Below, in pieces: positions 809 to 64,000 of a DNA stretch of 64,000 nucleotides (within the stretch, counting starts at the first letter, position 1; each line of letters opens with the position of its first letter). A program made the translations under genes and the position numbers. The notes under the pieces are model-generated. The model did not search any database and had not been told where the DNA came from. It worked only from the letters and a program-made list of their open reading frames with translations. The stretch is from the NCBI GenBank assembly GCA_965644295.1, contig CBFFRP010000167.1, positions 104,691-168,690 of the forward strand, given 5' to 3'. The stretch comes from Paraphysomonas bandaiensis (taxonomy: Eukaryota; Protista; Chrysophyceae).

Positions 809-2785
809 ATGAGTATATTGAGAGGCGCAACAGTTATCGCTCTTGTTTTGTTTGTGAGGTTATCAACAATCAATGCACGAATGAAATAATTTCTATGCAG
901 TGCGAATGGAGGATACAGATCACGGCTGGTATCTATGCTGAATCGAAACCAAATTCAGAGCAAACTCTTTGAGCCATGTATGGGAAAAGGTGAATGCTTC
1001 AGGTAAATTCTCTCTATATAAAAATAAGTACCAATCAATTAGACACTTTGTAGTGGCGCTTGGATGGGTAATATAGCTCATCTATTAGATAATCCAAAAC
1101 TTGATGAATTTTTCCCCAATGGTGAAATCGATAAGGACACTCGATCCGTTCGTTGCGAAGATGCGTCTTTTTTCTTTTTTCATAAAATGCTCGATATTCG
1201 TCGCACAGAGAAATGGGGCGAGCCTCCTATTCAGACGATTGATCTCTTTGACTTCTCTGGTTTATTACTATAATATTATATCGTAAGTAATACCAGTTAC
1301 TGTAGTTTTACATTTGTCATCGACGGAGAGGCTTTTGTACAAAACTTTGAATCGTTCGAAGGAGGCAAAGGTATTGCTCGTATAAGTCACAATTAAATAT
1401 CTTTCAGCTTCATAGGACTTGCTGGAAAGGGAGATGAATCACACACTTCGGTCTCTGAGCGTTTATTTTAATCCTCATGCGGAGGGTAACATTAGGTGAA
1501 CGACTGAGTATTACATGAACGGACTTCATCTATTTCTGCAGACGGATGGCCATGGAAGGCAAGAGCACTGCTTTGGCTTCTTCTGCTATCTCATATAATT
1601 TTAAAGTACTGTAGACATCATTTTACGTTTACCTACTGAACTAATTTTCTGACTACATACCAGAACAATAGGAGGTCTTTGCAGGAACTCGCAGATCGCA
1701 CTCTTGTCGTGATACCCTTTCTTCTTAGCAGCAAGGGTGAAAGTTAGTACAATTGGGTAGTGTTAACTCTTTGTAAAATATATTTGGTACGCAGGTGGCA
1801 CAATGAAAACTTATAGAAAGAAAAATCTGAAGTTGTGTTTTTGGTCAATCTTTCCACTCTTTCGCAATATAATTGGTAATGCAAGATTTGCAGCGATTGA
1901 GTAACGTACTCACGTGCTTTGCAGGTGCCGTCGTCAATGACAGAGACAGAGAGCAAGCTTTACGCATATTACCTTTTTCACGTGTGATCAAGATTCCCGG
2001 TCGGTGTCCTGTTTGGGGCAGCGACTTTCTCCTCACTTACCATGTGCAGAAGTGACAGTGACGGGCATGTGTGGGCTTCCGATGGCAGCTCTTTTACAAA
2101 TTAGGCGGTCTGTGTATTGCTAACATCTTATCGGAGCATCATATGCTTTTGATGTAGGGAAATGTTGATTAATACGACGATGCGAGACTCATTTGACTTC
2201 ATATACTATACGGAAGGGGATCAGGTTTTGTTCGCACGGAAACTGCCGGACATATTTTCGTATCTGACGACACACCAATATACAGTGAGTTTTTATAATT
2301 ACTTGTAATTGTATCGTCACTTGTAATATGAGGCCTTATCTCCGCATCGACTCGTTGTGCCATCGGAATTGGTGCTACAGAGTTTTGGCAGAAACTTGAC
2401 TGAGATGATAAATATTGGCGGTAGCCATTCAAGATTTTCATGCTGTCTTGATACTTCTTCACTTGCTGTGACCCGCGTACACTGGAAACCAATTTCCAGT
2501 CCGTCAGCTACTGTGATAAAGATATTTGGTGTACCAGTAGTAGCAGGCAACGGGAATTTTTTCACTCAAGAGTATCGAGTCTGTAACATTTCTCATCGAG
2601 TAAATCATTGCCCTAAAAATGTGAACTCTGCTACATTTCTGATGTATGATGAAGATCCGCCTATATTTATTAAGGTGTTATGTTGAACTTATCTGTATAC
2701 TTAGCAGTAATTGTTATATAAGGCTATCCAGGAAAAACTCTACGTAAATGATATGAATGGTGGGTTGACGAAATATATTCACTAG
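809..2785 (+). CDS. Multi-exon (~11 exons) secreted or signal-anchored protein of unknown function, possibly glycosyltransferase-like
   Basis: Manual splicing at GT-AG introns gives one open frame: MSILRGATVIALVLFVSANGG...RTLVVIPFLLSSKGG...LKLCFWSIFPLFRNII...FDFIYYTEGDQVLF...LSPHRLVV...TKYIH*. Hydrophobic N-terminus; ExD motif after a beta-strand. Confidence 0.7.
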
Positions 2786-5616
2786 GAAGGGGTATTCGTT
2801 TTCACCGGTTTAGCCAATGATCTTTTTTCCCTTTCCGAGAACGTGTCCTAGTATAGTGCTAGTGTTGATTAAACTAAGCTATGTATAGATTTTTATGAAA
2901 ATCCCGGCTTATCTTTTGTGTGTGCTGACAAGCAAGCCTCAGCTACTTCTACACTACACTTGCGTCATTCATACATGATTCCGAAAACCCCTCGCATTCT
3001 AGTGGATGAGGAGTCTCAACCAATGCAATGCTAGACCTATAATGAGATACTTAGTCATGCATGGTCACGAGAAGCTCCGCGAAATCGTTTTTAGGGAATG
3101 GAAAGATGAACATGGCTTTGTTAGTTGCTAGAATCTGCGCGAAAAACATATACAGGTGATGCATTGCTATGAAAACCCCGTGTAAACTCTATGAAGAGGT
3201 GAAAACAGATGAGGCAGTAGAGTGGTTCTCACAGAATCTGTACGCGATCTATATGGTCAGCCAAGATGGTGGCGGGTGTGCGTAACTACGTAGAATTAGC
3301 GCAAAATCTGGTGTTGTAAGTGGTGTACCAGTGAACCCACACTATGGCTACACTGTCGGAATCAGGCCCTGGTAACCATTAACACCTATAAGTAGACAAT
3401 ACCGCTCATAATATATAGTGTGGTGCTCCCTTAATTACTAATTTTTAGTTAAATAACAGACTACGAATTGTAACTACTTCTCGCTCTCCACTGGCACATC
3501 AGGAACTTCTTGCAGGGTTTCATGGAGGGCATCATAAGCATCCCACAACATGTATAATTCGCTCGTAGGAAATAGCAACGATTCTAGAAAATAAGAATTC
3601 AGGTGTCATGATCAACTTTGCACGATTACAGAGCCTCTCAACAATAACATTAGATTGTGCTTCGATATAAAGCAAAAAGCTGTAGTTGGTCTCTTAGATA
3701 CTAAGTCGAGCTCTCTTTTGGTGACCTCGGCGCTGTCCAGAATCAGTTTCTGCACTTTTGTCGAATGAGAACAAACTGGCATTCTTAAACGTCTTTAGTT
3801 CTCTATATATAGCATATATCAAGTACCAATACATACATGCCATTAATAGTACTTACCGGCAATTATAATGGCATGCATTAATGAAAAATGTCGCGGCGAT
3901 TATAATGACCATTTTAATGGTAATGGCCGCAATGGGGCAGGTATGCAGGTATGCTGTAGTACTGTAGTTTCGCTTCATAAACAACTTAATTTTAGATTGT
4001 GATATATATATCCTGCGTACAGGAGTGGTATACAGAGTAGAGTATAAAGTCTTGTCTACTCCATGTTATCTTCTAGAGGATATATATATACAGCACCGTA
4101 AGTAAACCATATGCAAACGTGGGGGAAAAAATTCCCGCGCTTTTGACGTGTATTCCTCTTGTTAAAACTAGCTTGCTACTAGAGTCCTAAAATAAGTTTC
4201 TGCATTATTTGTACTGATATATATTATATTATTGACTAATATTGCAAAGTATTATTATTTTTCAGTGTATAAATGGGCTGAACTAACCATTTGATTGAAA
4301 TGTACGTGAATTAGCTACAAACTAGTTCTAGCTAGTCATTATTGTATAAACTTAAAGCCACATGATTATATAGAACAGAAGAGTAACGAACATACAATGT
4401 ACACTCTACTCTACTCTCTCTACATATATTTCAATAACATTCTGCAGAATACTTTGTTCTTATCCTTCCTGTTATCAAGCTCGAGGCACTGGGCTTCAGC
4501 TTTGAAGTTGTCACGTTCGTAAGCAAAATGAATGTGTTCCAGTATAGAAGACTTTCTATACAGGAGTTCTTCCTGCTCTTCTTTCTATCTTTGCTTTGGT
4601 TTCGACGGGGAGGTCTCATCTTTCGACGAAGCTGAATGATGCCTCCTCTTCACAGCTGCTGAAGTGCCCATCATCAATGCGTGCAGGTAACTCCACAGAG
4701 CTCTCGATCTCTTTCTTCCGACAACCCTTTCTTAAAAAGTAGACTTATAATTAGTCAGGTCATGCACTACAGAAGCTGAAACTTGATACTTTTAAAGGAC
4801 TATAGGAACGTCAATAGCGATGACATTGTCGAATAATATAAGACTTTGAAGATATATAATTATTTACTACCACTAGCGTTCTGATTAGGTAGTGGTTATA
4901 TAAGTAGCTCAATTGACTCGGAGTGTTTTAGTGCTTGATATTTATATCAGTGTGCATGGTATACTGGACATTTCTGTTGCTATATATAGTGCATCATATT
5001 GATCAGTGTGCTTCAGTTCGATAAGTTAATGCGAATTTTGTTTTTGTGTGTATGTGAATGGAAGTATATCTGGTTAATTAATTATTCAAAAGATAGTGTT
5101 GATTTGACAGTTTTCAACAATTTGATATTATTGTCAATTTATTGGAAGTATTTTATCAGAGTATTGTATTGATGTTCATTGAATCTTGTTATAATATTGG
5201 AGATTATTATTACGGTTTACACGCTGATAATCGATCGACAAAATATTTTGTTCAAATGTTATCGATTTCAAGTTGGTGTTTCAGTGGAGAGTAATCGATT
5301 AATGCCAGGAATATTTCTATAAGCTTAATTCCGAGTGAATATTTAGTTCATTGTATTTTCGATTCGCCATTTCAACTCTTGATATTTTCGAGAAGTGTAT
5401 TATTTTTATTAACTACTTACAAGAGTTTATGCATCGATATACATAGATAAATGCGGAACACAGATGCATCGCCTTCAATGCAACAATAATCCAGTATACC
5501 AAAAAATAAAGTACGATACATTACATCTTTAAATCCTAATGATAGCTTTGTCCCAGTGATAATTCGCGTAGGTATCATACTGCTAATTATTCTTGGCAAA
5601 TCATAAAGCACAAGGC

Positions 5617-8600
5617 TTATCTATCGTTTGTGTCAGTAGAGGCGGGATCGCGCGAGAACTTATCATCGTGCTCGCTGCTACACTCCTCATCAATATTCTC
5701 CATTACAGATGCACGATTCTTTTTCACACTCTTTCCAAGTCTCCCTTCATCGTCGCCATCATCATTGTCACACATGTCTTCATGTTCACTCCACATTTTC
5801 GCAGATATCTTGGAGTGATAAATCTCCCTATTCTCTAAAATATACAGGCGACGATGCAAAGATTCCAGCTGTGCTTGGATCACATTTCTTTCGTCCGTAA
5901 TGGCTGTAACAGATGACACGGACGCCGCATTCATATGATCCTCCTTTCTTACCTCAGCCTTCTTCGGAAACAGCTGAGATAATATCCTTCAGATAAGTTA
6001 ATTAGACGATACAAAGAAAACGCCGATAAATACCTAGACTTTATTCGTACACCGTCATCTTTCTTCACCAATTGAAATTTCTTATCGAGATCGTACCCCT
6101 GTACTAATGTTAGTGCTATGTTTCCATATACTATATTAAATTGATGACATCACCTCTAATAAGTTTCGTAGAATCCGTAGAAATAACAAGTCCATTATCT
6201 TGATAGCAGTAATTACGAAAGAAACCGCGATTACAGCACGTATTGTCGTTGCTTTCATATTGGTAAGTAGTATGATAGTCGATGTCACTCCGCATGATAT
6301 GAATACCGCGAATGTTGCTGTACAGATTGAATATCACCACTTAAACCCAAATAAGAGAAATATGCTCACCGTATACTGCGCTCCGTATATGGCTCGTACC
6401 AACTGGAAGATTTCGTGTGAGAAAGCAGAGTACAGCACCCATAAGAAGAATCAGTGCTATGTACCCGAACTGTAAATATATATACACGTCACTGACATTG
6501 TACGAACAACACAGCACATTAGTAATTTCAAATTGATTATCGCGTATAGTTTTCTTCTCAACAGAGCTTCCATTTGTATTTAAAGCAAGCAAAACGACTG
6601 CAATAACGACAAGCAAAACTGTCCGAAATAAAGCCTGAGCTTTCGTTACTTTCACTCGAGTTAGGGAATTGTTGAGAACCATATACATACGCCACGTCTT
6701 CACAACAAGGGGTACAAATACAAGGTGAAATGCGAGTTGAGAGAGCCACAATAGCGCTTCGCATCGAACTGAAGTCACTTCTAGACACATCACGATTGCT
6801 GCGACGCATGCCGTAATACATCCCGTTAGAATAACATACGCTAACTCTGGTTGTGCTATTCCAATCAACCTATACTCTCTGTAACAATATATTAGCACTG
6901 CACATGTTATTGCGATTAGAATTCCGATGACGGCCGCGGCGATAACAAGAGCAGCAATGAGAAGTGGAAGGTGTATCGTTTGAGGATCAGGTCTATCTGT
7001 GGTACGGGTGTTATCCGCGGTATTGAAAACGACATCACTGCTACAAACGCGGCCCATTGACATGCCACTAAAACAGGGCAAAAATACAGATTCTGGACCT
7101 GTTTGCACTGCCCCAATTTGAATGAAACCGATGTGATCTGAGACGTTTTCTAACTTTTGCTCCAGGTACTTATCAGGATCAAAATTCAACACCCTGTAGA
7201 CAAGTCCTTCTGTACGAGCCCCCCCTGCACCGACACCAATGAGCTGCCCATCCAAAGAAACCGGTCCACTCAGTCCGCGGAAGCGCGCGTACTCTTCCAT
7301 TGATTCCCTGAGAGAGTTATGTGTGATGTTATCTGCATGAGTGACATTGTTTTCTGACAAGTACAACAAGTGGTGCAGTCCGTGTGCTAACGCAATTACC
7401 GCATCATACGCAAAAGCTACAGTTCTACTCATTTCGTTGCCGGTGTAAGTAGAGAAGTTAAGTCCTGTGCAGACAAGGGAATAGTTATGAATAGACTCGT
7501 TTTCCATTTCATACGGACAGACGGGTAGCAAGGATGTTTGATGCAAGTAGAACGTGCCACTGGAATCTGTTGCGTTGTTACATTCCCACTGGCCATCATG
7601 CTCTTGCCCATTTGTAGGATCTTGCACACTCCACCTAGACACGAAGGCGGAAAACTCGTCTGATTCACGGTTTATGTCCAGTGAAACCCCTATGGAGCCT
7701 CTCATCACTTCTACTACATCAGAAGACGACATATCTCCACCGATACCCTCCCAGACTTCGGGGTATGTGATTACCTCTGTGCCAATGATCTGGATTCCTT
7801 CCCGAAACACTCCTCTCTTACGCCCTTCAGAGAGAAGGCAACCTACTTCATGAGGAGAAATCAGCAGTACGTACACACGCGCTCCGCTTTGTCGCATGGC
7901 CTCCAAACTCAATTTATAGGCATCGCTGCAATTACTCCACGTTACACCCTCTTCGATACTGACAAAGGGTAGCTCAACAGTAGTCAATACAGATATACCG
8001 TGATGCCCTGCTCGCCTCATGAACTCCGCACTGGAATATATACCATCGACCCCGGTAGAATGTACAACACAAACCCTTCGCCAACCATAACTAGACGCAA
8101 TGAAGTCCGCCAGCACCCTGCCCTGAAGGGAATAAGGAGGGTTTGCTTGTAGAAATGCCGGAAAGAGTTCTCGATCAATCACGAGTGTTGAATCTAACGA
8201 AAACCCCACCCCTAAAATATTACCTTCCTCGAATACAGGCCGCGTGCCTAAATCGTTTATAACATACAAAAATGCATAATATGATATTGACTGACCTCTC
8301 AATGCAATTTCTTCATCCGGGCCTAAATAGGCAACAATTCCAGAGCCTTCCGTAAGTGCGGTTGCTCCAAGACCAGAGCATCTGAAGGTGTCAGTACTCA
8401 AAAATCTTGAAGATATTCGTGTGGTAGGCAGAATATTATCATATATTCCGTCAGATTTGTTGTTTATTTCACGAATAGCCATTAGTATAGCTGATTCTAC
8501 TTCCACATTAGAAACACTAATGCTCCCATATGATAGCAGCGACATAACGACACCGATATTGACATCATTTAAAGTCGAAGCTTCACTTAGCCAGACCAAG

Positions 8601-8644
8601 AGATGGATAAGATATATGAGGACCCCTATCTTGCTCCTTCCCAT
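5617..8644 (-). CDS. Class C GPCR-like receptor (Venus-flytrap/ANF-receptor ectodomain + 7TM, GABA-B-like)
   Basis: ORF 6341..8689 has a signal peptide from ATG 8644, ectodomain motifs (AIREIN, YGWRRVCVVHS, FAYDAVIALAH, FRGLSGPV) and TM helices (AQPELAY, LVVKTWR). Three further spliced exons add the last TMs and a tail (ORF 5617..5934) with a coiled coil. Confidence 0.85.
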
Positions 8645-10013
8645 ATCTATTTTATACGACAGATATGCAGATAGAACAGGCCCAAACACAAGTAGATACG
8701 CAGGTACAGTACAGGGAGCTAATCAACATCTACAGCCTACCACTCATGTCACCAATTTGATAATATACAGAACTAACTGACAGATAAATGACCTGTTCGT
8801 GTTCTATGAAGTGCATAGAGCAGAGTAGAGTAGAGTTCTATATATATATCTGTGTATACGGTATATATATATGGAGAGAGAGGGCTCACTGTGGTATATA
8901 TATACGTACGTAAGTAGTACTTGAATACACAGTACACTGTACACTGTACATACTGCTCTACCTCCCATCCTCGAAGCAGTTATACCCATACAAAAGAGCA
9001 GCAATCTGATAATATTCTGAAAAACACTGATTTTGGCCTAACTTCTCTAAGAAATAATGGTATCTACAGAGAAATCTGTCTATTTTTTCGAAATATTGAT
9101 TTTCTTGTCGTCAAAATTGTCTGTTTTTCTACAGCAGTCTATACTCTGAACTGAGAAGGTGAGAGAGAGCAAGCTGAACAATACTCATATAACTGTGAGA
9201 CAACAGCATCAACATATCTGTTGGTATTCAAGATCAAGAGAGACTATGAAGAGATACTCACCAGCAGAAAGGAACTGACTACGAAGAGATCTTTTATTTA
9301 ATTGCGGTGGATGTAGTGCTACATCGCCTGGCAGTGCATGTGCATAAGCCAACCCGGAGATATAATTAAAACTATTACAAGTATGAACGACTGCAGCGCG
9401 GATGACCCGATCATGAACCTTGTGAATCATAAACACTTCGAACATATCCGACTTTGGTTCCATTATGTGTTTTTGCAATAAGAAGCCTAATCAGGATGAA
9501 TGTGTACTGACGGCAGAAACAGCAGCAGACATAAAGACAATGGCCTTCAGAAAAGTCATTAATTTCACTCGGTGCTATTATGCCAAGTGGGCTCGAGTAT
9601 ATGTATATATGTCGAACTATGCTCACCAGTTGGGAAGTATTACTATGCGCTTGAAGGTTTATGTATTTATTAGTGGTAGCTTGTTCTATCAACAGCAATG
9701 AAATACCATACACAATTACTATAATAAGAGAGAAAGCAAACAGTATAAGCTAATACTGTGATAACATTGGAGACAGTGCTTGTAAGGTGATGTTGGCTGG
9801 TACTACCTCGTAGCAACAAAACTATCACAATATCAATATACTTTAACAGTTCTCTTAAGTGAATTAGTAAGCAGTTTTCTATCTATACAATACTCAAACA
9901 CTATTAGAATTTGGAATGCATTATGCATTACAATTCATAGATATGTTCAATGCACTAGTTCAGCTGAAGCTTATATAAGAATGAGAAACTACAGTTCTAT
10001 GATAATACAACGA

Positions 10014-10412
10014 TACAACGAGTAACTCATAACAGCCTCGAGAAGTAGTATATGTAGCATAAGAATTTATAGCTTTAGTTTTAACCACACTCAAAAACCA
10101 CACACAACATCAATACACAAAGAAACAGAAAACACTGTTAATATTAACAAAAAACGTAACATTCATTTCTGACTCAACTCAAATGAACTATGTCAATTCG
10201 CATGACATAGTACAGATTATACAACGAGTAACTCATAACAGCCTCGAGAAGTAGTATATGTAGCATAAGAATTTATAGCTTTAGTTTTAACCACACTCAA
10301 AAACCACACACAACATCAATACACAAAGAAACAGAAAACACTGTTAATATTAACAAAAAACGTAACATTCATTTCTGACTCAACTCAAATGAACTATGTC
10401 AATTCGCATGAC
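10014..10412. repeat. Tandem direct duplication of ~193 bp (period ~206 bp)
   Basis: TACAACGAGTAACTCATAACAGCC...GTCAATTCGCATGAC occurs twice, essentially identical. Confidence 0.9.
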
Positions 10413-34113: not shown

Positions 34114-34934
34114 TGAGGAGAGTTCAGAGGATGCCTCGGAGAGGACGAGAACGAGAAGGCGTTAGCTGCGTGGGAGGCGAATGATCGCAAGCGGCGTAAG
34201 CTGGAAACGAAGCGCCAAGTAGCAAAAGCAAAAGGCACTTTTGAGCAGAGTGTGCTAGGAAAAGACGAGAGGCTTTTAGGCGAGACTGGATAGAGACTCC
34301 TCGGCGCCCTCTGTGTCATCCCGTAACGCAATCTGCACCGGGTCTTCAACCCTCGGATCATAACAGATCGGACGTAACTTCGAGATATGATGCTTCGTCG
34401 TGCCTTTGGTCAAAAGACTCTGCACTGTATAAATTCCACCATCTATTGCCACCACCTTCATGGGGCCTTTTAAATATGGTAATAACTTGCTCGGAGGACC
34501 CTTCCTCAACGAGTTATGGCGATATTCCACTAGCACCAAAGCCCCTACCGGATATGAGGATATACCCTCCGGCATATTAGACTCAATATGATGCTGGTCT
34601 CGGATACGCAAATTCTGTTGTGCATACGCCCTAACCTTATCCTGAGCGACAAAACTGTCTACCAGCTACAATATCGATATTCAATTACTATGATGTCTAG
34701 GAGAATTAGGAAAAGTAAACGCGTTGGAGAGAAGGAAGTTGAGGGGGTTCCAGAGGAACCGAGACCCTCCAGTGTTGTGGAAGGGGAGGAGGCCCCCTCA
34801 ACTTCCTTCTCTCCAACGCGTTTACTTTTCCTAATTCTCCTAGACATCAGAGTAACTGAATATCGATATTGTAGCTGGTAGACACCAAGAGAATGTAGAC
34901 TAGGGAATATATGGTTATTATGCATATAAGAATT
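34114..34934 (-). mobile_element. Rearranged Ty3/gypsy retrotransposon remnant (integrase C-terminus plus 5' leader)
   Basis: ORF 34276..34611 YPVGALVLV...SKLLPYLKGPMKV...HISKLRP (GPY/F-type integrase tail). 34793-34934 reverse-complement matches the element leader at 56790-56940. Confidence 0.75.
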
Positions 34935-35073
34935 ATGTATGTATGTATGTATGTATGTATGTATGTATGTATGTATGTATGTATGTATGTATGTATGTAT
35001 GTATGTATGTATGTATGTATGTATGTATGTATGTATGTATGTATGTATGTATGTATGTATGTATGTATGTATG

Positions 35074-35105
<32 letters not shown>

Positions 35106-35283
35106 TGTATGTATGTATGTATGTATGTATGTATGTATGTATGTATGTATGTATGTATGTATGTATGTATGTATGTATGTATGTATGTATGTATGTATGT
35201 ATGTATGTATGTATGTATGTATGTATGTATGTATGTATGTATGTATGTATGTATGTATGTATGTATGTATGTATGTATGTATG

Positions 35284-35314
<31 letters not shown>

Positions 35315-35695
35315 GTATGTATGTGTATGTATGTATGTATGTATGTATGTATGTATGTATGTATGTATGTATGTATGTATGTATGTATGTATGTATGTAT
35401 GTATGTATGTATGTATGTATGTATGTATGTATGTATGTATGTATGTATGTATGTATGTATGTATGTATGTATGTATGTATGTATGTATGTATGTATGTAT
35501 GTATGTATGTATGTATGTATGTATGTATGTATGTATGTATGTATGTATGTATGTATGTATGTATGTATGTATGTATGTATGTATGTATGTATGTATGTAT
35601 GTATGTATGTATGTATGTATGTATGTATGTATGTATGTATGTATGTATGTATGTATGTATGTATGCATGTATGTATGTATGTATGTATGTATGCA
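34935..35695. repeat. (TATG)n microsatellite, ~760 bp
   Basis: Near-perfect tetranucleotide tract. Confidence 0.99.
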
Positions 35696-35766
35696 TGTTG
35701 CTTATGGTTGTTATGGTGGTATAGTGTATGGTACAGTGTATCATATCATAGTGTAGTGTACTAACG

Positions 35767-39095: not shown

Positions 39096-42000
39096 CTATC
39101 TTAAGCGTTTAATATTGAAGCTTTCCATACTTGCTGCAGGGTGAGATACGTAAAAATTTAGTTTGAATTGACATGCAGTTGGTTTAAAAGTGGATGGCAC
39201 AATCGCATATTGACCTGCTACAAGTTCAATACTTTGTAATGAGGCTCCTGTCGGTCGAACAACATACTTTCCATCATTACTAGATGCCAAAGCAGTCTTC
39301 GAGCTGCAAGTACTATTCAAAACAAATTGTTTGGGAGTGTCGGAATCTACTTCGGTATCATCAGGTGTCGTTTCCGTATCAGATTTCCTTTGGAGTTCCG
39401 ATGAAGGTACATCGCTACGCTGCAAACATTGTGCTGCATCGAATAGAGCGAGGTGCAATCCGACATTGGAAGCTTCTGACCTTGTGGATATTACTGTAAG
39501 TCGACACGAAAGAGTCGCTGAAACAGGTAACTGCAAATACGTAGAATTAGTGTATATAATATACATTATATGAACAATGTACCGTGACGAGATATATAGG
39601 ATTATTTTTGTATTGTCCGTAGTTAGAGCATCCAGCAGCCGTTCCATCATCCTGGGAGTACCAGTAATCGCAGGAAAACTATATTCTGTATTAATACCTG
39701 ACGCCATTCTCCACTATGAGATATATTCTGCATCTTATACCCCTCTGGAGCAATCTAACAATCAAGCACGATATGACATGACGATGCATTATAACAAGGC
39801 ATTCACCTCACTAACGCTGAAATACTTCTTGTTAAAGGAGGGCACTTGACTTGCACCAGCTTTAGTAGCGAACGTCAAAACAAATGGTCCCCGAGAAGTA
39901 TTAGAGAAAGTGGATATAACCACAATGTATTCTCCTGTTAGACAAAACATTAGAGACGAGATGACATTATATGTCATGGTTCTATACTCGACCTGGTGCC
40001 AATATATCCATAGCACAGTAGCAGAATCCAGACCTGAAATGGAGTCAAATAAAGAAGTAACAGGGGTGTACATTACTTGTAGTTCCCCGACGTCATCACT
40101 TCCGAAGCATCACTGACGATGCAATCGATGCGCCCACATGATTGCGATTCCTCAGTTTCATTGCTTTTTCTAGGGCTGTTTATTCTCGGATCAATAACAG
40201 ATATGCTGGCACTGATCTGATTAAATATACTCAGCACATTTTTACTAGAAGTAGACAATAATAACCTCTTTGGGAAACATAGCATGAATATGCATGTCCA
40301 AGCCCTTCTTGCCATTGATACGCAATCTACGAGTTCAAGGGGACGACATGAAATATTTATCGTAACATGGCCCCTACTACTATACCGATATTGGGGATTT
40401 AAGTAAAAGAACTCGCTGCTTGTATTTCCTCCAGCGTTACTTTCAGTCCACTCGCCATGAATAGTGAGCTGTATTTATCACCTCAAATGCTAATAATACT
40501 ACTGTACTGGTACCTGATTTTGAGGTAGCGGGGGGCATGGAGTACACGTAAACGGAAGTCTTGTAGAGTACACCGAGAGTGTGAAGTTAATATCTTTCTT
40601 TTTGTCATTCTGTGATAGCACCAGTGTATACTCAATAGGCTGAAAAAATATTACACAGGTCGTCTCGATCACAATACAAGCACCTTTCCATGGGGATATT
40701 CCAGGGTTTTCTCGGTACTATCTTCAGTTGTGATATCTATGCGAGTGAGAATATGGGGGTCGCTTGAGTAAACTCCCTTCACATAAGGAGTCGTGGGAGC
40801 GTAAATGCGCTTGCCTCCCCTGCGACGATACATTAAGTTTTAAGCACCAGATTATATAAAATCACCTGTACACATGCAGTGTTAAAAAAATTTCTTTATC
40901 TGGGTCAGATGAACATTCCTCTACTGTCGATGTGATATGCCGGCTGAGAAGAACCCAGACTGTGGACGAATCTGCAGAGGGTATACCACTCTATTCACAG
41001 AAGCGTAAAACTATGAGGTATACAAAAACTAGATGAAATGTATTACCTGTGGGGCGGTATGACTGCCGTTTAAACACAGGTGATATTGAGGAGAAGCCCC
41101 AACGTAATACGTATCCTTACGTGGTCCCTGGGACAAAGGCCAGTGTCCATGCAAAGTAGAGCGGAATAGAAACAGTGCCGGGTTCCCTGCAAATAAGTAA
41201 GATAAAGTAGAAAGGCTTGCATTTACGATTGCGTACAATTTAAAAAAAAACTATCAAACACCTTTCTACAGTCAGAAAACTCAATCCAAAATATCCCATG
41301 GTCGTTCAACTTCTGAAAGTTTTCTACTGACACTCCTAGGGCCTTACTGAGATCTGGAGACCAGTGATCCGCCGAAGAATATCTACCTCGCCAGGCCTGT
41401 CTTGCCCATGGGTTCTTCACCTGCATCATTCTCAAGTTTCCAGATACCTTTACATCCAGCACAGCGTATGCGTGCCCTGGCACTAAGCCTGTAGCTTCTT
41501 CCTCTTCCGGAGAGAGATTTCCGGTTGATATTGTTATCAAACAGTCACCAAACTGATGCGCACTCAGTATTCGTTGCCAGGCCCTGTCTTCGGACTGTCT
41601 AAAATCCGATGACGGATACTCCGAATTGCGTGCACTTTTGGAATCCTCCTCGAAAAACACATGCTCAGGTATCCACCCCGTTAGTGCATGCAAGTCAATA
41701 CCGGAGTTTGAACCAGGAAAATCATATCCACCGTTAACTTTCATGTAAGCTTTCTCTATAAGGCTCACCCAGAATTCCTCAGGATCCCTGGAGGCAGAGC
41801 AGAGAAGTCGCCTGTTGCGTTTGCAGACCGGCAGTCTATCGTCAATTACAACTTTGCGGAACACTCCATTTAGAAAAAGCTTTACAATATACTTTCCCGT
41901 AGAACTAATGATGGGAACCCCATGTTCATTCTGTGGGTATATAATCGAAGTGATTAATTTTCGGTTGTGACGAGCTTCATATGCGGAGGCGATACAGAGG

Positions 42001-42833
42001 GAGCAAACGAATGAGCAATCTGCAACTAAGTCCTGTGTAATCCAAAGAGGGCTCACACGACGAATCATCACAGGTGATCCATTGGGCCCAACGATGTCAG
42101 CCAGACGGCGATACTCAGCGACGTGGCGAATCTGTGACTCAGAGAGTGATGGTAACCCATCTGGGTCTTCATAAAGCCTTGAACCTGAAAATACCTCCCT
42201 CTTTTCATCATCCATCCACGGCAGAAACCATTTGCCATTGATAGTACTCGATGCGCGCAATATGTACTTCTCTTCGTCACTGAAACTCTCCGAGGTTGCT
42301 GGAGTAACATGTGCCGCAATGTTTGGCGGCGCAGATGGACTAGCTAGAGCAGATTTAGTCTCCAAATTATCAGCGGAAGAATCACAACTAGTACTTATCT
42401 CAACTGCAGTCATCGCCTTTATCACAGTCGCCCTGTCTAGTATCGATGCCACCCTCTTTCTTAGTGTTTCATTATCTCTTTTTCTCAACGCTTCCATGTG
42501 ATAATCGACTGCTTGTGTATATAATTTGACAGTATTGGTCGAGCGGTCACCTCGTTCGTCTAAACTCAGAGCCTTCTCTAACGCCATATCTCCTTGACGA
42601 ACCAGCTCAACACACGACTCAAGTACACTCACATCTGACTTATACAGTTGTATTTTACTGTGTATAAGGTTTCTTTTATCATAATCGCATTCCATCTGAA
42701 TAATAGAACTAAACTCCTTAAGAGCCCTCTGATAGTGATCAACAGACTCTCTCCAGTGAAAAGATCGATCAAGATCAGTGGCTGTCTTGAGACTTGAGAA
42801 GGCGGCATCATATCGAGCCGATAGAGAGGCCAT
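39096..42833 (-). CDS. CAPN7: Calpain-7/PalB-like protease (two MIT domains, CysPc, calpain III domains), multi-exon
   Basis: QDLVADCSF (catalytic Cys), LIEKAYMKVNGGYDFPGSNSGIDLHALTGWIPE, GHAYAVL, KNPW; C-terminal YAIVPSTF. Confidence 0.92.
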
Positions 42834-46039: not shown

Positions 46040-47680
46040 TTAATCAGAAAACAATTTGCGAATCATCACATCCATCCAAGGTATGAAGAAATCACACTCA
46101 TCCTTCCTAACACCGTGCAACTCATCAATCTGCATAGGTCCATGCAAGGCTAGCAAATTGTCATCGTCCAAGTCGTAAGCCCTCCACAGAGGCAATGTAT
46201 GTGAAGAGTTAGGGACGTTATGGCCGTTAGGAGAACCGTTTTGTTCAATAAACGCTCCCCAATATCCCGCCATTATATCTGCCATATCGCTATCAGTATC
46301 TGACGCCATGTAGCTGTTGTCGTGGAAAACAAACGGAATTTCATTGGTGTGCTGAACAAAAGGAACGCTGCTGCCATCTGCCAAGTAGTCAAACCAATAC
46401 AAATAGCTTCCATATTTACGCTGTTCTTCTTTCTGCTTCAATGCTATCTGCTGAGAACCATACTTCGCTCCACAGTAAAAGTCTGCATCAGCAAGAGCGC
46501 GTTGACCCGCCCACCAATACAGACTCGGTACTTGTCCATCCACTGAAACATAAGGGTACGATGACTCATTCTTTCCCCGTACATAAAGATCCAACAGTGA
46601 ATTTATTTCAGTAAGGGTGAAATATGTGCTCCAGTACGCCACCAACCCTGCCTCCTGCACATTATATGAAAGTGGAAGGAACATGCTTCCTTCATCTGTA
46701 TTGGTGCCATGCAACACCGTCACGTCTGCAAGATTTCCTGCAGAAGCAGCTATCCAAGGGTGGGTCAAGAGCTCAATACCATCAACTGTAGGGTTATAGG
46801 GTGTACCATAATACACACTAGAAGAAGTGATATCCAATGAAGCGTTGTATATAGTCTGCGTAGGGAGGGCCAATAGGCATTCTAGGGTATCACATTGTAC
46901 CTCTTGTAATAGCGATGCAAAAGCATCTTCTGCAACCCACATTGGCTGTGTAATCCACATGATAAAACTCCCTGATTCCATGATTGCGGAGGAAAAATAA
47001 GGGGTAGATCGAGGCATTGCGAGGTGGTTGGATACACTCCCAGCCCCTGCAGACTCTCCAAAAATCATCACCTGTTGCGGATCTCCCCCAAATGCACGGA
47101 TATTCTCATGAATCCAAATAAGAGCCTGTCGCTGGTCTTGCAAACCATAGTTACCAGTGCTACCATCTCCTTTGTCATGCTTTCTTAGCACAGCAGATCC
47201 ACTGAATCCAAATACATTGAGGCGGTAATTCATAGAAACCACAATGGCGCTACCGAGCCAAAAATTGACAAAGTCACTGCCTTCGATATCATTTCCCATT
47301 CCTGACATATAGCTTCCTCCATGAATGTACACTGCCACTGGTAACTTTCCCCCCGTGTTGTGCAGTCTAGTGGAGTCCACCCATACATTAAGAAACAAAC
47401 AGTCCTCACTGCCCATTTCAACGCCATCAAAATAAGTCTGTTTACAGGGGCTACCATATTCAGTAGCATCCAGTACGGTATGTGGGTCTGGATTAGTCCA
47501 TGGTTGAGGAGGAGCCCAGCGTAGATCGTCGACAGGAGCAGCAGCATAGGGCACTCCTTTAAATGCCGTTACACCGGCACTTGTGTGGACTCCCTGTAGC
47601 TGTGTGCCATCAGGTAACACAACTATATCTGACCCAACTGCTGAGTGGGTTACTAGTAGATATATAAGGGCTGTAAGCAT
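46040..47680 (-). CDS. Secreted type-B carboxylesterase/cholinesterase-like
   Basis: Signal peptide, SEDCLFLNVW, IHGGSY, FGESAG nucleophile motif, GTNTDEG, HTNE. Confidence 0.93.
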   Translation of the reverse strand: MLTALIYLLVTHSAVGSDIVVLPDGTQLQGVHTSAGVTAFKGVPYAAAPVDDLRWAPPQPWTNPDPHTVLDATEYGSPCKQTYFDGVEMGSEDCLFLNVWVDSTRLHNTGGKLPVAVYIHGGSYMSGMGNDIEGSDFVNFWLGSAIVVSMNYRLNVFGFSGSAVLRKHDKGDGSTGNYGLQDQRQALIWIHENIRAFGGDPQQVMIFGESAGAGSVSNHLAMPRSTPYFSSAIMESGSFIMWITQPMWVAEDAFASLLQEVQCDTLECLLALPTQTIYNASLDITSSSVYYGTPYNPTVDGIELLTHPWIAASAGNLADVTVLHGTNTDEGSMFLPLSYNVQEAGLVAYWSTYFTLTEINSLLDLYVRGKNESSYPYVSVDGQVPSLYWWAGQRALADADFYCGAKYGSQQIALKQKEEQRKYGSYLYWFDYLADGSSVPFVQHTNEIPFVFHDNSYMASDTDSDMADIMAGYWGAFIEQNGSPNGHNVPNSSHTLPLWRAYDLDDDNLLALHGPMQIDELHGVRKDECDFFIPWMDVMIRKLFSD

Positions 47681-56126: not shown

Positions 56127-56280
56127 TCTAATGGTGGAGAAGAATGGCTAGAGAACACTGAAGGACATAACGATTATTAATAGGCAAAGTGACACGGCAC
56201 TATATACATACATATATACACAGACCATACAGTAGATATCACCACCAGATACACACACTCCACAAACCTTATGCCACACG

Positions 56281-56655
56281 TATGTACAGTATGTATGTAT
56301 GTATGTATGTATGTATGTATGTATGTATGTATGTATGTATGTATGTATGTATGTATGTATGTATGTATGTATGTATGTATGTATGTATGTATGTATGTAT
56401 GTATGTATGTATGTATGTATGTATGTATGTATGTATGTATGTATGTATGTATGTATGTATGTATGTATGTATGTATGTATGTATGTATGTATGTATGTAT
56501 GTATGTATGTATGTATGTATGTATGTATGTATGTATGTATGTATGTATGTATGTATGTATGTATGTATGTATGTATGTATGTATGTATGTATGTATGTAT
56601 GTATGTATGTATGTATGTATGTATGTATGTATGTATGTATGTATGTATGTATGTA
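56281..56655. repeat. (TATG)n microsatellite, ~370 bp
   Basis: Near-perfect tetranucleotide tract. Confidence 0.99.
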
Positions 56656-56656
56656 T

Positions 56657-59075
56657 TGTGGCATGAAACCCCAGCCTTTTGGGAAAACCTTGGGTTTTTA
56701 GATTTGCGATCACTCTCCTTCAGGGTTTGCCTTGGGCACGTCCCTTCAGGATCGTGATATAGTGATAGGCAGTTGCTTCATGCCAGCCTATACATACATG
56801 ATTCTTATATACATAATAACCATATATTCCTAGTCTTCTTTCTCTTGGTGTCTGTCAGCTACAATATCGATATTCAGTTTAACTGATATCAAGGAGAGCA
56901 AGGAAATGAAAACGCGTTTTAGAACAAGAGTGTGAGGGGGTTCCTGAGGAGCCGAGACCCTCCAGTGTGATGGAAGGGAAGGAGGCAGGGGCCTCCGACC
57001 GAGAACTTCCAAAGAGTGATTTAGATTATGAGGGTGAGGGGGTTCCTGAGGAGCCGAGACCCTCCAGTGTGATGGAAGGGAAGGAGGCAGGGGCCTCCGA
57101 CCGAGAACTTCCAAAGAGTGATTTAGATTATGAGGGTGAGGGGGTTCCTGAGGAGCCGAGACCCTCCAGTGTGATGGAAGGGAAGGAGGCAGGGGCCTCC
57201 GACCGAGAACTTCAAAAGAGGGATTTAAATTATGAGAGTGAGGGGGCTCTTGAGGAGCCGATAACCTCCAGTTCAACGGAAGGGAAGGAGGCAGAGGCCT
57301 CCGACCGAGAACTTCCGAAGAGTGGTTCGTATGGAAAATACTCCAAAGGTGAGTTCTGCGAATTATACTCGGCTGTCATGGGTTGAAATGAACAGGGTGG
57401 GAAAAGGATGTGCAAGGCTCTGCTTGATACTGGCGCGTCGGCGAACTTTATTAGTAAAGACGTTGTACAGTGGTTGATAGAGAGTGATTCTGTTCCAATA
57501 CCTGTAATTAAGAATATTGCGGGTGGCTTGAAGTCTGCTTTTGCATTGTGTAGGAGGGGTGTACCCTTTGATGTAAAAATCCTTTCGGAGGCAAAGGAGC
57601 CTCCGGGGTTGCAAGCTAGGTTAACTGCTTGGGAATTAGATTTAAATTTTGATATTATATTAGGAATGCAGACTGTACGAGAACTAGATTTAGTTGTACA
57701 TTGCCCTAATGCTTTATGAGCACGGACAGCGCATGGCGGCTAGCCAACGTAGTGGGAAACAGCGCATTCCTTCATGCGAGAGAGAGAGATGATCAGTCTG
57801 GGGGAGCAGTGCCTCTTGGCCTGGGCGTGCACGCGTCTTACCCTTGTGGGGGGGAACGAGCCAGCGTTCGTCTACCGCTACGCAAAAATTATGACCTTGG
57901 GGTGCAGAGCGAGTTAGCTCCACTCGAGGTAGGAATCAATGATAGTGGCGAAGATTGGTCATACCCAGTGGAGGAGCAGTTGCTCTCTCTGGGGGTCGAG
58001 GACCCTACTAACTTCTCGACCAGGTCCGCAAGGGACCGAGAGAATATGAAGGAGATTCGCGATGATCAATTGGAGTCTATTGATTCTGATTATTTAAGTG
58101 CGGAAAAGGATCCGCAAGTGCTTCCAGATAAGATATTTGGATCCCCGAGTTTACAGAGTCGTATCCGGGATGTCCTGGGGGAATACAAGGAGATATTCCG
58201 ATTAGAGATTCGTAAAGGGGAACCAGCCAAGCTGGAGCCTTTTGAGTTAGAAGTCCGGAACCCGTCTGAAACGTGGTTGATACCGGCACATAAATTGCCT
58301 CCCCGGAGGTTAGACAGGAGTCGCCAGCGCGAGCTCCAACATTTGGTGGATAAGCTAGAGAAGTTAGGAGCAATCCAACTTAGCACAGCCACTCATCACA
58401 GTCATCCCTTTGTGGTGCCGAAGCCAGATAATAAAGGGCGGTGGGTAATAGACTATAAAAACTTAAATCGGGTCACGACTTCAGAAAGCTGGCCAATTCC
58501 AAATATAAGAGATATGATCTATAGAATTGGTGCCAGGGGGTAAACGATCCCGTGCTGGGTTGCCTTTTTACTCAAAACGGGGTGTACGAGTGGCTCCGGC
58601 TCCCCATGGGTTTAAAGTGCGCTCCATCTTATTTCCAGAGGCAAATGCAAAATATAGTGCTTGCGGGCCTGGTATATAATGAGTTTTCTTTGCATGCAAT
58701 ATTGGGAAATTATACAAAAAGTCTCAAGCGCATCGGAAAGTGCTCGACTGGTCAGTGGAGGCCACGGTAGCATTCGATGAGCGGAAGGAGCGAATTCATG
58801 AGTGTCCCTTATTATTTTTTATGGATGATGTTTTCCCCATCTATCTATATACTGATGCATCAATAATAGGGATTGGGGCTCATTTGGTGCAAATCGTGGA
58901 GGGTCACGACGCACAATAATTGGTATGATTAGTAAGACGTTCGAGTCAACCTTGGCGAAATGGCATACCTGTGAGCAGGAAGGATTTGCCATTTTTGTAT
59001 GCCTTGAATAAGTGGGAATACTTGTTGAGAGATCGACGTTTCATTGTTCGAACTGATCACGACAGCTTAAAGTCG
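56657..59075 (+). mobile_element. Degenerate Ty3/gypsy LTR retrotransposon (protease, RT, RNase H; stops and frameshifts)
   Basis: ALLDTGASANFI (aspartic protease); HPFVVPKPDNKGRWVIDYKNLN and YEWLRLPMGLKCAPSYFQ (RT); YTDAS..GIGA, EQEGFAI, FIVRTDH (RNase H). Begins TG right after the microsatellite. Confidence 0.9.
56933..57325 (+). repeat. 102-bp tandem repeat (~3.8 copies) in the gypsy leader
   Basis: Unit GAGGGGGTTCCTGAGGAGCCGAGACCCTCC...; last copy diverged. Confidence 0.92.
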
Positions 59076-59299
59076 AGGTAATACCAAAACCTGGGTTTTG
59101 ATGTAAAACCTGGTGAAATTTTTGGTGATGGTCGGAAAAGGGTATAACTATGCACAATAAGTAACTATGAAGTTAATAACAGTGTGAAGAGTATTATTTA
59201 TAATATTTTTTACTAATTTCTTCCATATTACTTCAGTTTTACAGCAATAAAAGTCACCGACTACACATATATATTACATACAGTTCACAAGTATGAACT

Positions 59300-59849
59300 A
59301 TAACCATCTCACTAAACACCACTACACCATCTCAGAATACACCCACATACCATCTCACTATACACCCATATACCATCTCACTATACACCCATACCATATT
59401 ACTATGCATCACTATACCATCCCACTATATTATACCACTATACCATCTACTGTATGCCACTATACCACCTAACTATACATCACTACACTATCTCACTATA
59501 CACCCATATACCATCTCACTATACACCCATATACCATCTCACTATACACCCATACCATATTATTATGCATCACTATACCATCCCACTATATTATACCACT
59601 ATACCATCTACTGTATGCCACTATACCACCTAACTATACATCACTACACTATCTCACTATACACCCATATACCATCTCACTATACACCCATATACCATCT
59701 CACTATACACCCATACCATATTATTATGCATCACTATACCATCCCACTATATTATACCACTATACCATCTACTGTATACCACTATACCACCTAACTATAC
59801 ATCACTACACTATCTCACTATACACCCATATACCATTTCACTATACACC
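59300..59849. repeat. C/A-rich minisatellite with ~161-bp higher-order repeat (3 copies)
   Basis: CACTATAC/CCATCT subunits; marker CTACTGTA at 59447, 59608 and 59769. Confidence 0.9.
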
Positions 59850-60831
59850 TACGTATGGGACAAATCATACGCGATGGGCAGAAACCAAGCCAAAGGAAAA
59901 ACCGGGCCTGATCACATAACAACGGCCTCAGCATGCGCAGACTGTGCACTCCCAATCGACAACATGGCACACAGCCTTCTCACCTGCACACACCCCGACC
60001 TCACTCACATACGTGAAGATGTTCACCAAGCACACCACAAGTTCGACAAACTTCGCACACGCACGCTCCCCCATCCCTGGTTCCACACCGCCATAATCAA
60101 ACTAGCAAAAGCCGCATGGAATCCACACACACCCCAGGCTGAGCGCTACTGGACCGGCCACATTACTGCCACACAATTGACCGACGCATTCGGACGCCAC
60201 ATATCCAGCTCACTGCTCGAACATCAGTTCCACGTTCTCGAAAAATCCGTAACCTCTATCCTCCTTCCCCTATATGGTGGAGGGCTCCGCATGCTTCGAA
60301 ACAGAGGTCTCAGACATCACAACACAGACACGGCATCAGTAACACCGATTACGACCCCACCACACTCACAGCAACGCCCGTCGCAGGATACTCACCCGAC
60401 ACCAAAAATACTCCAACTACTCCTAGCGACATCCACCCCAAGAATTCTATCCGCTGCAAGAGTCCGAACCCGACAGAGACAAGCACCACCACTCCGGAAA
60501 CAACTCCTCCTTACTTGTGGTCGAAATCCCACCTCGACAACGAGCACCATCTACACCACCGACTTACACTCTCATATACATCTAGCCCCAACCATCCCCC
60601 GTAAAACTCACGATACAGGCCCGGCAGACACACTGCCCAAAGGCAGACCCCCCGATTAACCTCACTGCAAGGGACGGTTGAACCATGGTGCTCGCAGCGA
60701 TGCACAAGCAGTCCCGAGACGGTAGCCCGCTAATAGTAGTATATAGTAAGTCGAGTTATTAGTTATTCTATAGATGTAAAACTAGTTTCTGTACGCAACC
60801 GTTCTCATGTAATAATCAGATATTCTTTTAT
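59850..60831 (+). mobile_element. 5'-truncated non-LTR retrotransposon (LINE ORF2 C-terminus)
   Basis: ORF 59874..60659 with a CADC...H...C zinc knuckle; flanked by the 15-bp direct repeat ATTTCACTATACACC (59835-59849 and 60832-60846). Confidence 0.7.
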
Positions 60832-62965
60832 ATTTCACTATACACCCATATACTACCTCACTATACATCACTATATTATACCACTATACCATCTCACTAT
60901 ACATCACTATACCATCTCACTATATACCACTATACTATCTCACTATATACCACTATACCATCTCACTATACAACCACTGCACCATCTAACTATATATCAC
61001 TATGCCATCTAACTATGCTAATATACCATCTCACTATACATCCAGATACCATATTACTATTCACCACTATACCATCCCACTATATACCACTATACCATCT
61101 CACTATATACCACTATACCATCTCACTATATACCACTAGTATACCATATCACTATATATCACTATACCATCTCACCATATGCCACTATACTATCTCACTA
61201 TATTATACCACTATACCATCTAACTATATATCACTATGCCATCTAACTATGCTAATATACCATCTCACTATATACCATTACACCATCTCACTATACAACC
61301 ACTGTACCATATCACTACACACCCAGATACCATCCCACTATACCATCTCACTATATACCACGATACCATCTCACCATATGTCACTATACCATCTCACTAT
61401 ACATCCAGATACCATCTCACTATACAACCACTGTACCATCTCACTATACACCCAGATACCATCCCACTATATACCACTATACCATCTCACTATATACCAC
61501 TATACCATCTCACTATATACCACTATACCATCTCACTATATTATACCACTATACCATCTAACTATATTATATCACTATGCCATCTAACTATGCTAATATA
61601 CCATCTCACTATACATCCCTACACCATATTACTATTCACCACTATACCATCCCACTATATACCACTATACCATCTCACTATATACCACTACTATACCATA
61701 TCACTATACCATCTCACCATATGCCACTATACCATATTACGATTCACCCATATACCATCTAACTATATACACTATACCATCTCACTATACAACCACTGTA
61801 CCATCGCACTATACAACCACTGTACCATCTCACTATATACCACTATACCATCTCACTATATAACACTATACCATATCACTATATACCACTATACCATCTC
61901 ACAATATACCACTATACCATCTCACAATATACCACTATACCATCTCACTATACAACCACTGTACCATCTCACTATATACCCAGATACCATCCCACTATAT
62001 ACCACTATACCATATCAATATATACCACTATACCATCTCACCATATGTCACTATACTATCTCACTATACATCACTATACCATCTCACTATATTATACCAC
62101 TATACCATCTAACTATATATCACTATGCCATCTAACTATGCTAATATACCATCTCACTATACATCCCTACACCATATTACTATTCACCACTATACCATCT
62201 CACTATATACCACTATACCATCTCACTATATACCACTACTATACCATATCACTATACCATCTCACCATATGCCACTATACCATATTACGATTCACCCATA
62301 TACCATCTAACTATATACACTATACCATCTCACTATACAACCATTGTACCATCTCACAATACACGCAGATACCATCCCACTATATACCACTATACCATCT
62401 CACTATATAACACTATACCATATCACTATATACCACTATACCATCTTACAATATACCACTATACCATCTCACAATATACCACTATACCATATCACAATAT
62501 ACCACTATACCATCTCACAATATACCACTATACCATATCAATATATACCACTATACCATCTCACCATATACCACTATACCATATCAATATATGCCACTAT
62601 ACCATCTAACTATATACACTATACCATCTCACTATACAACCATTGTACCATCTCACAATACACGCAGATACCATCCCACTATATACCACTATACCATCTC
62701 ACTATATTATAACACTATACCATATCACTATATACCACTATACCATCTTACTATATACCACTATACCATCTCACAATATACCACTATACCATATCACAAT
62801 ATACCACTATACCATCTCACTATATACCACTATACCATATCACTATATACCACTATACCATATCAATATATACCACTATACCATCTCAATATATGCCACT
62901 ATACTATCTCACTATACATCCCTATACCATCTAACTATATACACTATACCATCTCACTCTTACCA
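60832..62965. repeat. C/A-rich satellite, ~23-bp unit CACTATACCATCTCACTATATAC, with larger block duplications
   Basis: Continuous degenerate array, very G-poor on +; blocks at 61577 and 62125 (548 bp apart) nearly identical. Confidence 0.95.
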
Positions 62966-63141
62966 CATAATGCATGCAGCAGGCGGACATAAAGGTCTTC
63001 AACATGGCACTGGTTCTTTCATGCTAATAGTAAATATATCTGTACAATATATTTCAATAGTTAATGTATATTTATAATAGATATGTATTTTACTGCAAGC
63101 AAAAGACCATGGGCACAGAATACACGGATGCAACACGTGCA

Positions 63142-63948
63142 GATTGGGAAGGTCACATCTTTTCATGACGACACTGTCCCAATAGCAGTCGCCACCGCTA
63201 TTGAGGCGAGTTGAAGTCACAGGTTTCCTTCCGCAACCATTATATATACAGTATAACATACAAGTAAGTTCTGTCGACATCTTTTCATGACAACCCTGCG
63301 CCAATAGCAGTCGCCACCGCTACTGACACGAGTGGATATCACAGGTGACCGAACAAACAAGTATAACATATGAAGGTTGGGAAGGTCACATCTTTTCATG
63401 ACGACACTGTCCCAATAGCAGTCGCCACCGCTATTGAGGCGAGTTGAAGTCACAGGTTTCCTTCCGCAACCATTATATATACAGTATAACATACAAGTAA
63501 GTTCTGTCGACATCTTTTCATGACAACCCTGCGCCAATAGCAGTCGCCACCGCTACTGACACGAGTGGATATCACAGGTGACCGAACAAACAAGTATAAC
63601 ATATGAAGGTTGGGAAGGTCACATCTTTTCATGACGACACTGTCCCAATAGCAGTCGCCACCGCTATTGAGGCGAGTTGAAGTCACAGGTTTCCTTCCGC
63701 AACCATTATATATACAGTATAACATACAAGTAAGTTCTGTCGACATCTTTTCATGACAACCCTGCGCCAATAGCAGTCGCCACCGCTACTGACACGAGTG
63801 GATATCACAGGTGACCGAACAAACAAGTATAACATATGAAGGTTGGGAAGGTCACATCTTTTCATGACGACACTGTCCCAATAGCAGTCGCCACCGCTAT
63901 TGAGGCGAGTTGAAGTCACAGGTTTCCTTCCGCAACCATTATATATAC
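63142..63948 (-). repeat. 233-bp tandem array of alternating A/B hairpin units (4 A + 3 B), candidate structured ncRNA array
   Basis: A at 63142, 63375, 63608, 63841; B at 63264, 63497, 63730. Shared core CATCTTTTCATGAC...CCAATAGCAGTCGCCACCGCTA...TCACAGGT. Confidence 0.9.
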
Positions 63949-64000
63949 GTACGTACATGTAATCAAGCATAACAGACATTCATGGCAGACAGGTTCGTGT

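Follow-up and report, generated by a model that had tools for sequence, protein, structure and literature searches.

The window, a stretch of 64,000 nucleotides of Paraphysomonas bandaiensis DNA, carries close to its end a tandem array at 63144–63948, for which Tandem Repeats Finder gives a period of 233 bp, 3.5 copies and 100% matches. One period is built from hairpin unit A (63375–63471, 97 nt), an AT-rich spacer of 29 nt, hairpin unit B (63501–63587, 87 nt) and a second AT-rich spacer of 20 nt. Over a core of 74 nt, A and B form a gap-free alignment with 12 differences, 10 of which lie within the hairpin. An earlier sequence-only reading had described a 233-bp dimer of a 97-nt A and a 95-nt B sharing a colinear 70-nt core with about 10 substitutions; the period, the length of A and the colinearity are retained, while the length of B and the extent of the core are revised as given above. 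The minus-strand apex that it described and the motif common to both spacers read in the sequence as stated. The units follow each other in the order A-B-A-B-A-B-A and are assigned to the minus strand, on which the hairpins are stronger. Unit A1 (63142–63238) is placed in register with A2 around a covariance-model match on its core (63155–63228, 103 bits) and B1 (63268–63354) matches the same model with 102.5 bits; A2 and B2 are the two units of the period given above, and A3 (63608–63704), B3 (63734–63820) and A4 (63841–63937), the last unit, are likewise covariance-model matches. Unit A is the first and the last unit in all arrays of this kind. A tRNA scan of the array returned nothing. Minus-strand open reading frames of about 106 aa occur once per period, and a coding array is unlikely because 233 is not a multiple of three and the scanned ORFs of the surrounding element display no Pfam match.

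The array forms part of a copy of a ~6.87-kb non-autonomous transposon with terminal inverted repeats (TIRs), which occupies 59070–64000 on the plus strand and was delimited by aligning the end of the window (BLAST) with six internal copies from the genome. The copy begins at its left end, with a 25-nt TIR (59070–59094, plus strand) that directly follows TTA, presumably its 3-bp target site, and is cut at 64000, about 2.2 kb before the right end, where truncation of the locus indicates the end of the contig. Between the TIR and the array lie, all on the plus strand, a minisatellite with periods of 161 and 23 bp (59297–59849), an ORF of 261 aa without a Pfam match (59874–60659) and a long C-rich minisatellite with a 23-bp unit and a GC skew of about −0.9 (60835–62966). 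The 261-aa ORF displays an N-terminal Cys/His pattern (C..C ... H....C) and may be a captured fragment. The element additionally carries a 553-bp duplication and a 225-bp × 3 repeat resembling exon plus intron.

Folding and substitution pattern of the hairpin units

The fold energies of A and B were compared with those of 200 dinucleotide shuffles, both as RNA and as DNA. The minus strand of unit A (A2) folds as RNA with −40.1 kcal/mol (z −4.4; as DNA z −3.0) and its plus strand with −34.9 kcal/mol (z −4.3; as DNA z −2.1). Unit B (B2) reaches −35.9 kcal/mol as minus-strand RNA (z −3.9; as DNA z 0.05) and −17.4 kcal/mol as plus-strand RNA (z +0.2; as DNA z +0.7). As minus-strand RNA, both of the hairpins proposed by the sequence-only reading are thus more stable than their shuffles, and the alternating hairpin structure exceeds chance. 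The stem of unit B extends over ~25 bp and is interrupted by just three 1-nt bulges, unit A contains internal loops, and the apical loop comprises 4 nt. The closing stems, said to differ in sequence between A and B and yet to pair, do so in both units. Six minus-strand G-U wobbles had also been described, and the minus strand indeed holds six G.U pairs in B and three in A, with one wobble of the opposite kind, in A. Counted as independent events, about six wobbles favour the minus strand versus one the plus strand, a bias that is by itself not significant (binomial P ~0.12).

The differences between A and B are dominated by changes that mirror each other on the two arms. RNAalifold recovers the two compensatory pairs noted earlier, A-U to C-G and C-G to G-C, as well as two further pairs altered on one side with pairing kept, C-G to U-G and A-U to G-U. 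Of the 10 core substitutions, eight occupy four column pairs in mirrored positions, and at each of the six pairs affected B can still form a pair; the mirroring has P ~3e-4 in a permutation test, and P ~0.11 when strictly paired columns alone are considered. Adjacent double changes are present on both arms, at columns 13–14 with 59–60 and 23–24 with 51–52. For a transcript of two periods the minus strand reaches −186 kcal/mol (z −8.1), versus −130 kcal/mol (z −3.6) for the plus strand. In the minimum-energy fold of this minus-strand transcript, one B pairs with the next B within a diffuse ensemble; the array is therefore predicted to form hairpins and duplexes that compete with each other rather than a row of discrete hairpins.

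The sequence-only reading could not match the array to a known family, in agreement with the Rfam search, in which the single match within the array at E up to 10 is MIR7526 (RF04214; 22.1 bits, E 0.11, against a gathering score of 110). Since the aligned stretch runs over two adjacent units and not along a single hairpin, the match is of the kind that a palindrome gives by chance. The hammerhead, twister, HDV, pistol and hatchet models have no match in the array at E up to 10, and across the whole element no Rfam family reaches its gathering score. A covariance model, R1, was built from the cores of A and B with 22 pairs; in a whole-genome search it retrieves 115 units, every one inside the transposon subfamily described below, with no homologue elsewhere in the genome. 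JGI metagenome contigs scanned with the apex, both in exact and in wobble-degenerate form, likewise returned nothing. Degenerate copies contribute 34 units (20 distinct) with 98.6% paired cells, a figure biased upward because the alignment was fitted to the model. Among the 20 variants the same two pairs alone change on both sides, and the remaining changes comprise a few wobble-preserving transitions and several that break a pair. Thus, these further homologues add no new covarying pair beyond the split between A and B.

The TIR transposon family

The structure of the host element is defined by the full-length reference copy L045:1001–7865. Its 25-nt TIRs, at L045:1001–1025 and 7841–7865, are perfect, and the same ends are found in six of the six internal copies. 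Target-site duplications (TSDs) of 3 bp (TAA, CCT, TAG, AAC and GAA) flank five of the six complete copies, the older C141 copy being mismatched. In addition, a paralogue of the site into which the C263 copy inserted is found, free of any insertion, in the right flank of the C432 copy; at the position of the C263 TSD it has the 3-mer just once. Comparison of the six internal copies together with 20 kb of surrounding sequence delimits a common block of 6,865 bp, which is 99.87–99.96% identical among C146, C263, C288 and C432, and homology stops exactly at the TIRs. The C141 copy is older (90–98% identical) and the C433 copy carries a deletion. The array sits in the middle of the element, ~3.6 kb from either end. 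No Pfam domain, and no HUH domain, is present in the scanned ORFs of the element, which is called non-autonomous because a transposase was found neither in it nor in an identified partner. These data firmly establish that the array lies inside a young non-autonomous DNA transposon with TIRs; with six independent loci in different flanks, an assembly artefact is an implausible source of the TIRs and TSDs.

At least five contigs (the window, at 63949–64000, and the starts of C537, C338, C69 and C354) stop at the same base, ~50 bp beyond the last unit. A 5-bp indel, AAGCA, lies at this break, where it is present in the window and in contigs from DNA runs and absent in L045. The contig ends past the array look like a repeat-caused assembly break and not like a chromosome end. 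A subtelomeric location, considered in view of the several copies lying ~50 bp from contig ends, was rejected: at six loci within large contigs the element runs on to its full length.

The assembly searched comprises 62.5 Mb in 669 contigs, and the 233-bp period is present at 16 loci, nearly all 100% identical and with the same first and last bases. The arrays contain 3.5 periods in the window and in C432, 4.5 in C288, C146, C69, C338 and C537, and 5.5 in C141. This variation among copies that are otherwise 99.9% identical is typical minisatellite behaviour. There is no sign of satellite expansion in the assembly, where no array exceeds 5.5 periods and none lies outside a copy of the element, several copies being at contig ends where longer, collapsed arrays are possible. 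The 25-nt TIR end itself is far more widespread, occurring 285 times genome-wide (141 + 144) versus 0 for the reversed control. The related elements range from 0.6 to 8 kb and share the termini alone; L046, L047 and L050 are without the array. Thus, most of the ~140 family members transposed without hairpins, and a single subfamily, at the 16 loci, carries the units.

An autonomous partner was not found among the larger elements with the same ends. L046 is a non-coding member of 8.1 kb, and L048/L049 represent two separate ends that flank a clathrin heavy-chain gene. L047 (G000:C159:104082–111503) is a short family member with a nested LINE, the element sequence overlapping by 13 bp on either side of the insert. 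The insert contains an RT ORF of 877 aa and an ORF of 747 aa with RNase-H-like neighbours in the ESM Atlas, and the nearest ESM Atlas clusters of one of the nested-LINE ORFs are diatom proteins; the enclosure of this LINE by TIRs reads as ordinary nesting. The genome contains 42 matches to the Harbinger-type transposase DDE_Tnp_4, and the TIR is absent from six of the six loci inspected; among the candidates with 3-bp TSDs, PIF/Harbinger is the only one with a transposase domain found in this genome. The CACTA transposase domain Transposase_21 has no match in the genome.

Two relatives illustrate the origin of the dimer. The older relative in C297 contains a single A-like unit with the same upstream flank; 2 nt are inserted in its apical stem, and one arm of its basal helix is lost through a deletion of 7 nt. 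The relative in C26 contains one A+B period. Therefore, the dimer array is a recent elaboration. In the 3′ part of the element, beyond the window end, the 225-bp × 3 repeat (L045:6845–7685) behaves as exon plus intron, with GT..AG joints at 7132>7256 and 7357>7502 in RNA contigs. A stretch within the 3′ subterminal region of L045 shows 85–97% similarity to host sequence beside the C288 insertion. The TIR family seems to carry a captured gene fragment, the C288 copy sitting in a paralogue of that gene.

Transcripts, origin and possible role of the array

The array is represented in two marine plankton metatranscriptomes by collapsed unitigs of 286 and 263 nt, without mismatch and at a depth of ~3–4. 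In run X1 of the organism, taken to be RNA by guess, the array has a depth of 459, other interior parts of the element 48–600 and the gene-like 3′ part 2,000–7,000. In the RNA-run contigs of the three studies, array sequence is thus no more abundant than the rest of the element, and it may stem from DNA carry-over. A GT..AG joint is found in X1 at L045:7357>7502 and a second joint, 7132>7256, in metatranscriptome X3. The splice-like joint of X1 lies elsewhere in the element than the array and fits X1 being RNA.

The locus is best explained, at a probability of about three in four, as a palindromic internal minisatellite of a young non-autonomous TIR transposon, the minisatellite possibly being a passive source of dsRNA. 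A single palindromic unit, like that of C297, would have duplicated to give A plus B, as in C26; slippage or unequal exchange would then have multiplied the AB dimer, and transposition would have dispersed it. The mirrored substitutions would be a consequence of the palindromic unit, acquired through template switching or fold-back repair or through weak selection on pairing. The array would be transcribed at a low level along with the rest of the element and, every unit being a palindrome related to every other, its transcripts would fold into hairpins or pair up in extended, imperfect duplexes. These could feed the transposon-directed small-RNA pathway of the host, as a by-product and not as the output of a dedicated RNA gene. 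In P. tricornutum, the one diatom studied for this, most small RNAs (the bulk of those of 25–30 nt) map to transposons (PMC4247016). Since internal repeats in transposable elements are well known and P. tricornutum small RNAs fall on such elements, the likeliest role of an array transcript would be that of a further dsRNA substrate in transposon silencing. In its organization the array is ordinary repeat biology, a young non-autonomous transposon with an unstable internal minisatellite.

The compensatory substitutions had been taken as evidence of structured RNAs or ssDNA hairpin sites in the sequence-only reading, on the argument that neutral drift should not produce compensatory changes. This argument is too strong, for cases are documented in which a single event of template switching in replication built or repaired a hairpin stem or made compensatory changes of several bases (PMC8794818). 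The adjacent double changes between A and B fit such events. Template switching should, however, give Watson-Crick pairs, and two of the changed pairs of B are U.G, which counts against the preferred explanation; therefore, later point mutations or selection are needed beside template switching. Selection on an RNA fold would also give the mirrored pattern, which at P ~3e-4 is equally expected from it and counts against a passive array, as does the pairing of the closing stems despite their different sequences. A further point against the preferred explanation is that neither a transposase nor an autonomous partner of the element was found. The minus-favouring wobbles and the energies of the two-period folds (−186 versus −130 kcal/mol) point in the same direction. 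Selection on the minus-strand RNA fold would explain both the co-changing arms and the wobble bias, its basis being one A/B split and a 6-to-1 count of wobbles.

A transposon-borne hairpin-RNA array under selection is accordingly the alternative that shares most of these observations, and it is judged unlikely. Here the minus strand would be transcribed and the A and B hairpins, or duplexes between units, would be diced into small RNAs that act on the transposon family in cis or in trans, whether by self-regulation or by triggering host silencing. The array would then amount to a mobile cluster of miRNA-like hairpins or hairpin siRNAs. Such selection would account for folding that exceeds shuffles on the minus strand in both units (z −4.4 and −3.9), for the failure of B to fold on the plus strand and for the B stem of ~25 bp with three 1-nt bulges. 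The two compensatory and two wobble-preserving changes, with six of six changed pairs able to pair in B, are in keeping with it, although the covariation amounts to a single A/B split to which further variants add none. The 98.6% of paired cells across variants similarly speaks for maintained pairing, but this percentage is inflated by an alignment fitted to the model, and the older relative has lost part of its stem. Three RNA studies contain array sequence, yet at a depth no greater than that of the adjoining regions of the element, and most of the ~140 family members lack the hairpins. The transposon targeting of P. tricornutum small RNAs is favourable to this alternative, while canonical miRNAs were not detectable in P. 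tricornutum and none has been validated in diatoms (PMC4247016). A loop of 4 nt, and internal loops such as those of A, depart from the form of canonical pre-miRNAs, and the sole Rfam match, MIR7526, stays at 22 bits versus a gathering score of 110. The narrower proposal of a minus-strand-specific hairpin-RNA cluster, kept by selection on pairing and processed into small RNAs that regulate the ~140-member TIR family, is rather improbable.

A role at the level of DNA appears very unlikely. The units would in this case extrude as hairpins or cruciforms and serve as binding sites for a transposase or host factor, or as sites of recombination or replication pausing. The copy number of the array is unstable, as expected for structure-prone DNA, and unit A beats its shuffles as DNA on both strands (z −2.1 and −3.0); unit B, in contrast, is no better than shuffles (z +0.7 and 0.05), and G.T wobbles add little in DNA. 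Moreover, the array lies ~3.6 kb from the ends of an element whose array-less relatives transposed, no HUH/Rep-type gene is present, and the TIRs and TSDs indicate cut-and-paste and not ssDNA transposition. The hairpin recognition sites in single-stranded DNA suggested by the sequence-only reading are disfavoured, because B as DNA does not rise above its shuffles. The folding statistics and the regular alternation of the units would also suit a cluster of non-coding RNA genes of the host, such as a polycistron of miRNA-like hairpins or ribozymes that happens to lie beside repeats. This origin is extremely improbable and is largely refuted by the transposon boundaries, since every copy occupies the same position in the same TIR element with unrelated flanks outside; no ribozyme and no Rfam family other than the chance MIR7526 match was found at E up to 10. 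The polycistronic array of structured RNAs proposed from the first inspection has lost its support, as the array proves to be an internal piece of a transposable element, enclosed by TIRs and TSDs and present at 16 loci, without added covariation. A dedicated structured-RNA gene cluster is not supported.

As the minisatellite of a non-autonomous transposon, the array has parallels in several known systems. Internal tandem repeats are known from non-autonomous DNA transposons such as Tetris (PMC4079207), and the passage from transposon to satellite has been reviewed (PMC12628747). The closest likeness is to TIR-220 of Tetris, a foldback element of Drosophila virilis (PMC4079207), in which a head-to-tail repeat of similar size (~220–233 bp) also lies in a non-autonomous TIR element, copies differ in how many repeats they contain and the termini recur in a short related element. 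In contrast to Tetris, the present repeats are located in the middle of the element and not within the TIRs, and their period is a dimer of diverged palindromic hairpins; unlike Tetris and other transposon-to-satellite cases, no kb-size arrays were found outside the element, the maximum being 5.5 periods. In maize, miRNA-like structures of transposons correlate with small RNAs (PMC10760457). Similarly to these maize hairpins and to hairpin-RNA or endo-siRNA loci, the array places stable hairpins in a transposon that would be natural Dicer substrates if transcribed. Unlike hairpin-RNA and miRNA-like loci, its loop measures 4 nt, unit A has internal loops and the hairpins are known from the genomic sequence and RNA contigs alone. 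The tandem arrangement of hairpins of about pre-miRNA size recalls polycistronic miRNA clusters, from which the array differs in that its MIR7526 match falls far below the gathering score. Ribozyme satellites and retrozymes share with it tandem structured units of a few hundred bp that occur in RNA libraries; unlike retrozymes, the present element has no ribozyme match and moves as a TIR/TSD DNA element. The reverse-complement repeat with arms that change together resembles the products of template switching (PMC8794818), from which the U.G wobbles among the resulting pairs set it apart. Finally, TIRs with 3-bp TSDs, the lack of an HUH domain in the scanned ORFs and the failure of B to fold better than shuffles as DNA distinguish the element from IS200/IS605- or Helitron-like elements with ssDNA hairpins.

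For annotation, the array, the upstream 23-bp minisatellites and the gene-like 3′ part constitute one 6.87-kb element that breaks the assembly at several contig ends, and the whole element should be masked together and not called an RNA locus. The array is an example of a palindromic unit in a mobile element that gains mirrored, compensatory-looking substitutions, and it calls for caution in structure-based RNA gene discovery from few sequences. Should the small-RNA reading be true, the array would offer a tractable transposon-borne hairpin trigger for silencing.

Other features of the window

Two tandem tRNA-Cys(GCA) genes lie on the plus strand at 94–168 and 274–348, 180 bp apart. Very long tetranucleotide microsatellites are present at 34934–35698, (TATG) × 192, and at 56280–56656, (GTAT) × 94, each 98% pure. 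Tandem repetition is also observed at 10013–10412, as a perfect 206-bp × 1.9 duplication, and at 56928–57324, where a GC-rich 102-bp unit is repeated 3.9 times with 94% identity and, 102 being a multiple of three, could be coding. Long intron-free host ORFs encode a class-C GPCR with an ANF-receptor domain (6341–8689), an MIT-domain calpain (41223–42833) and a carboxylesterase (46040–47680).
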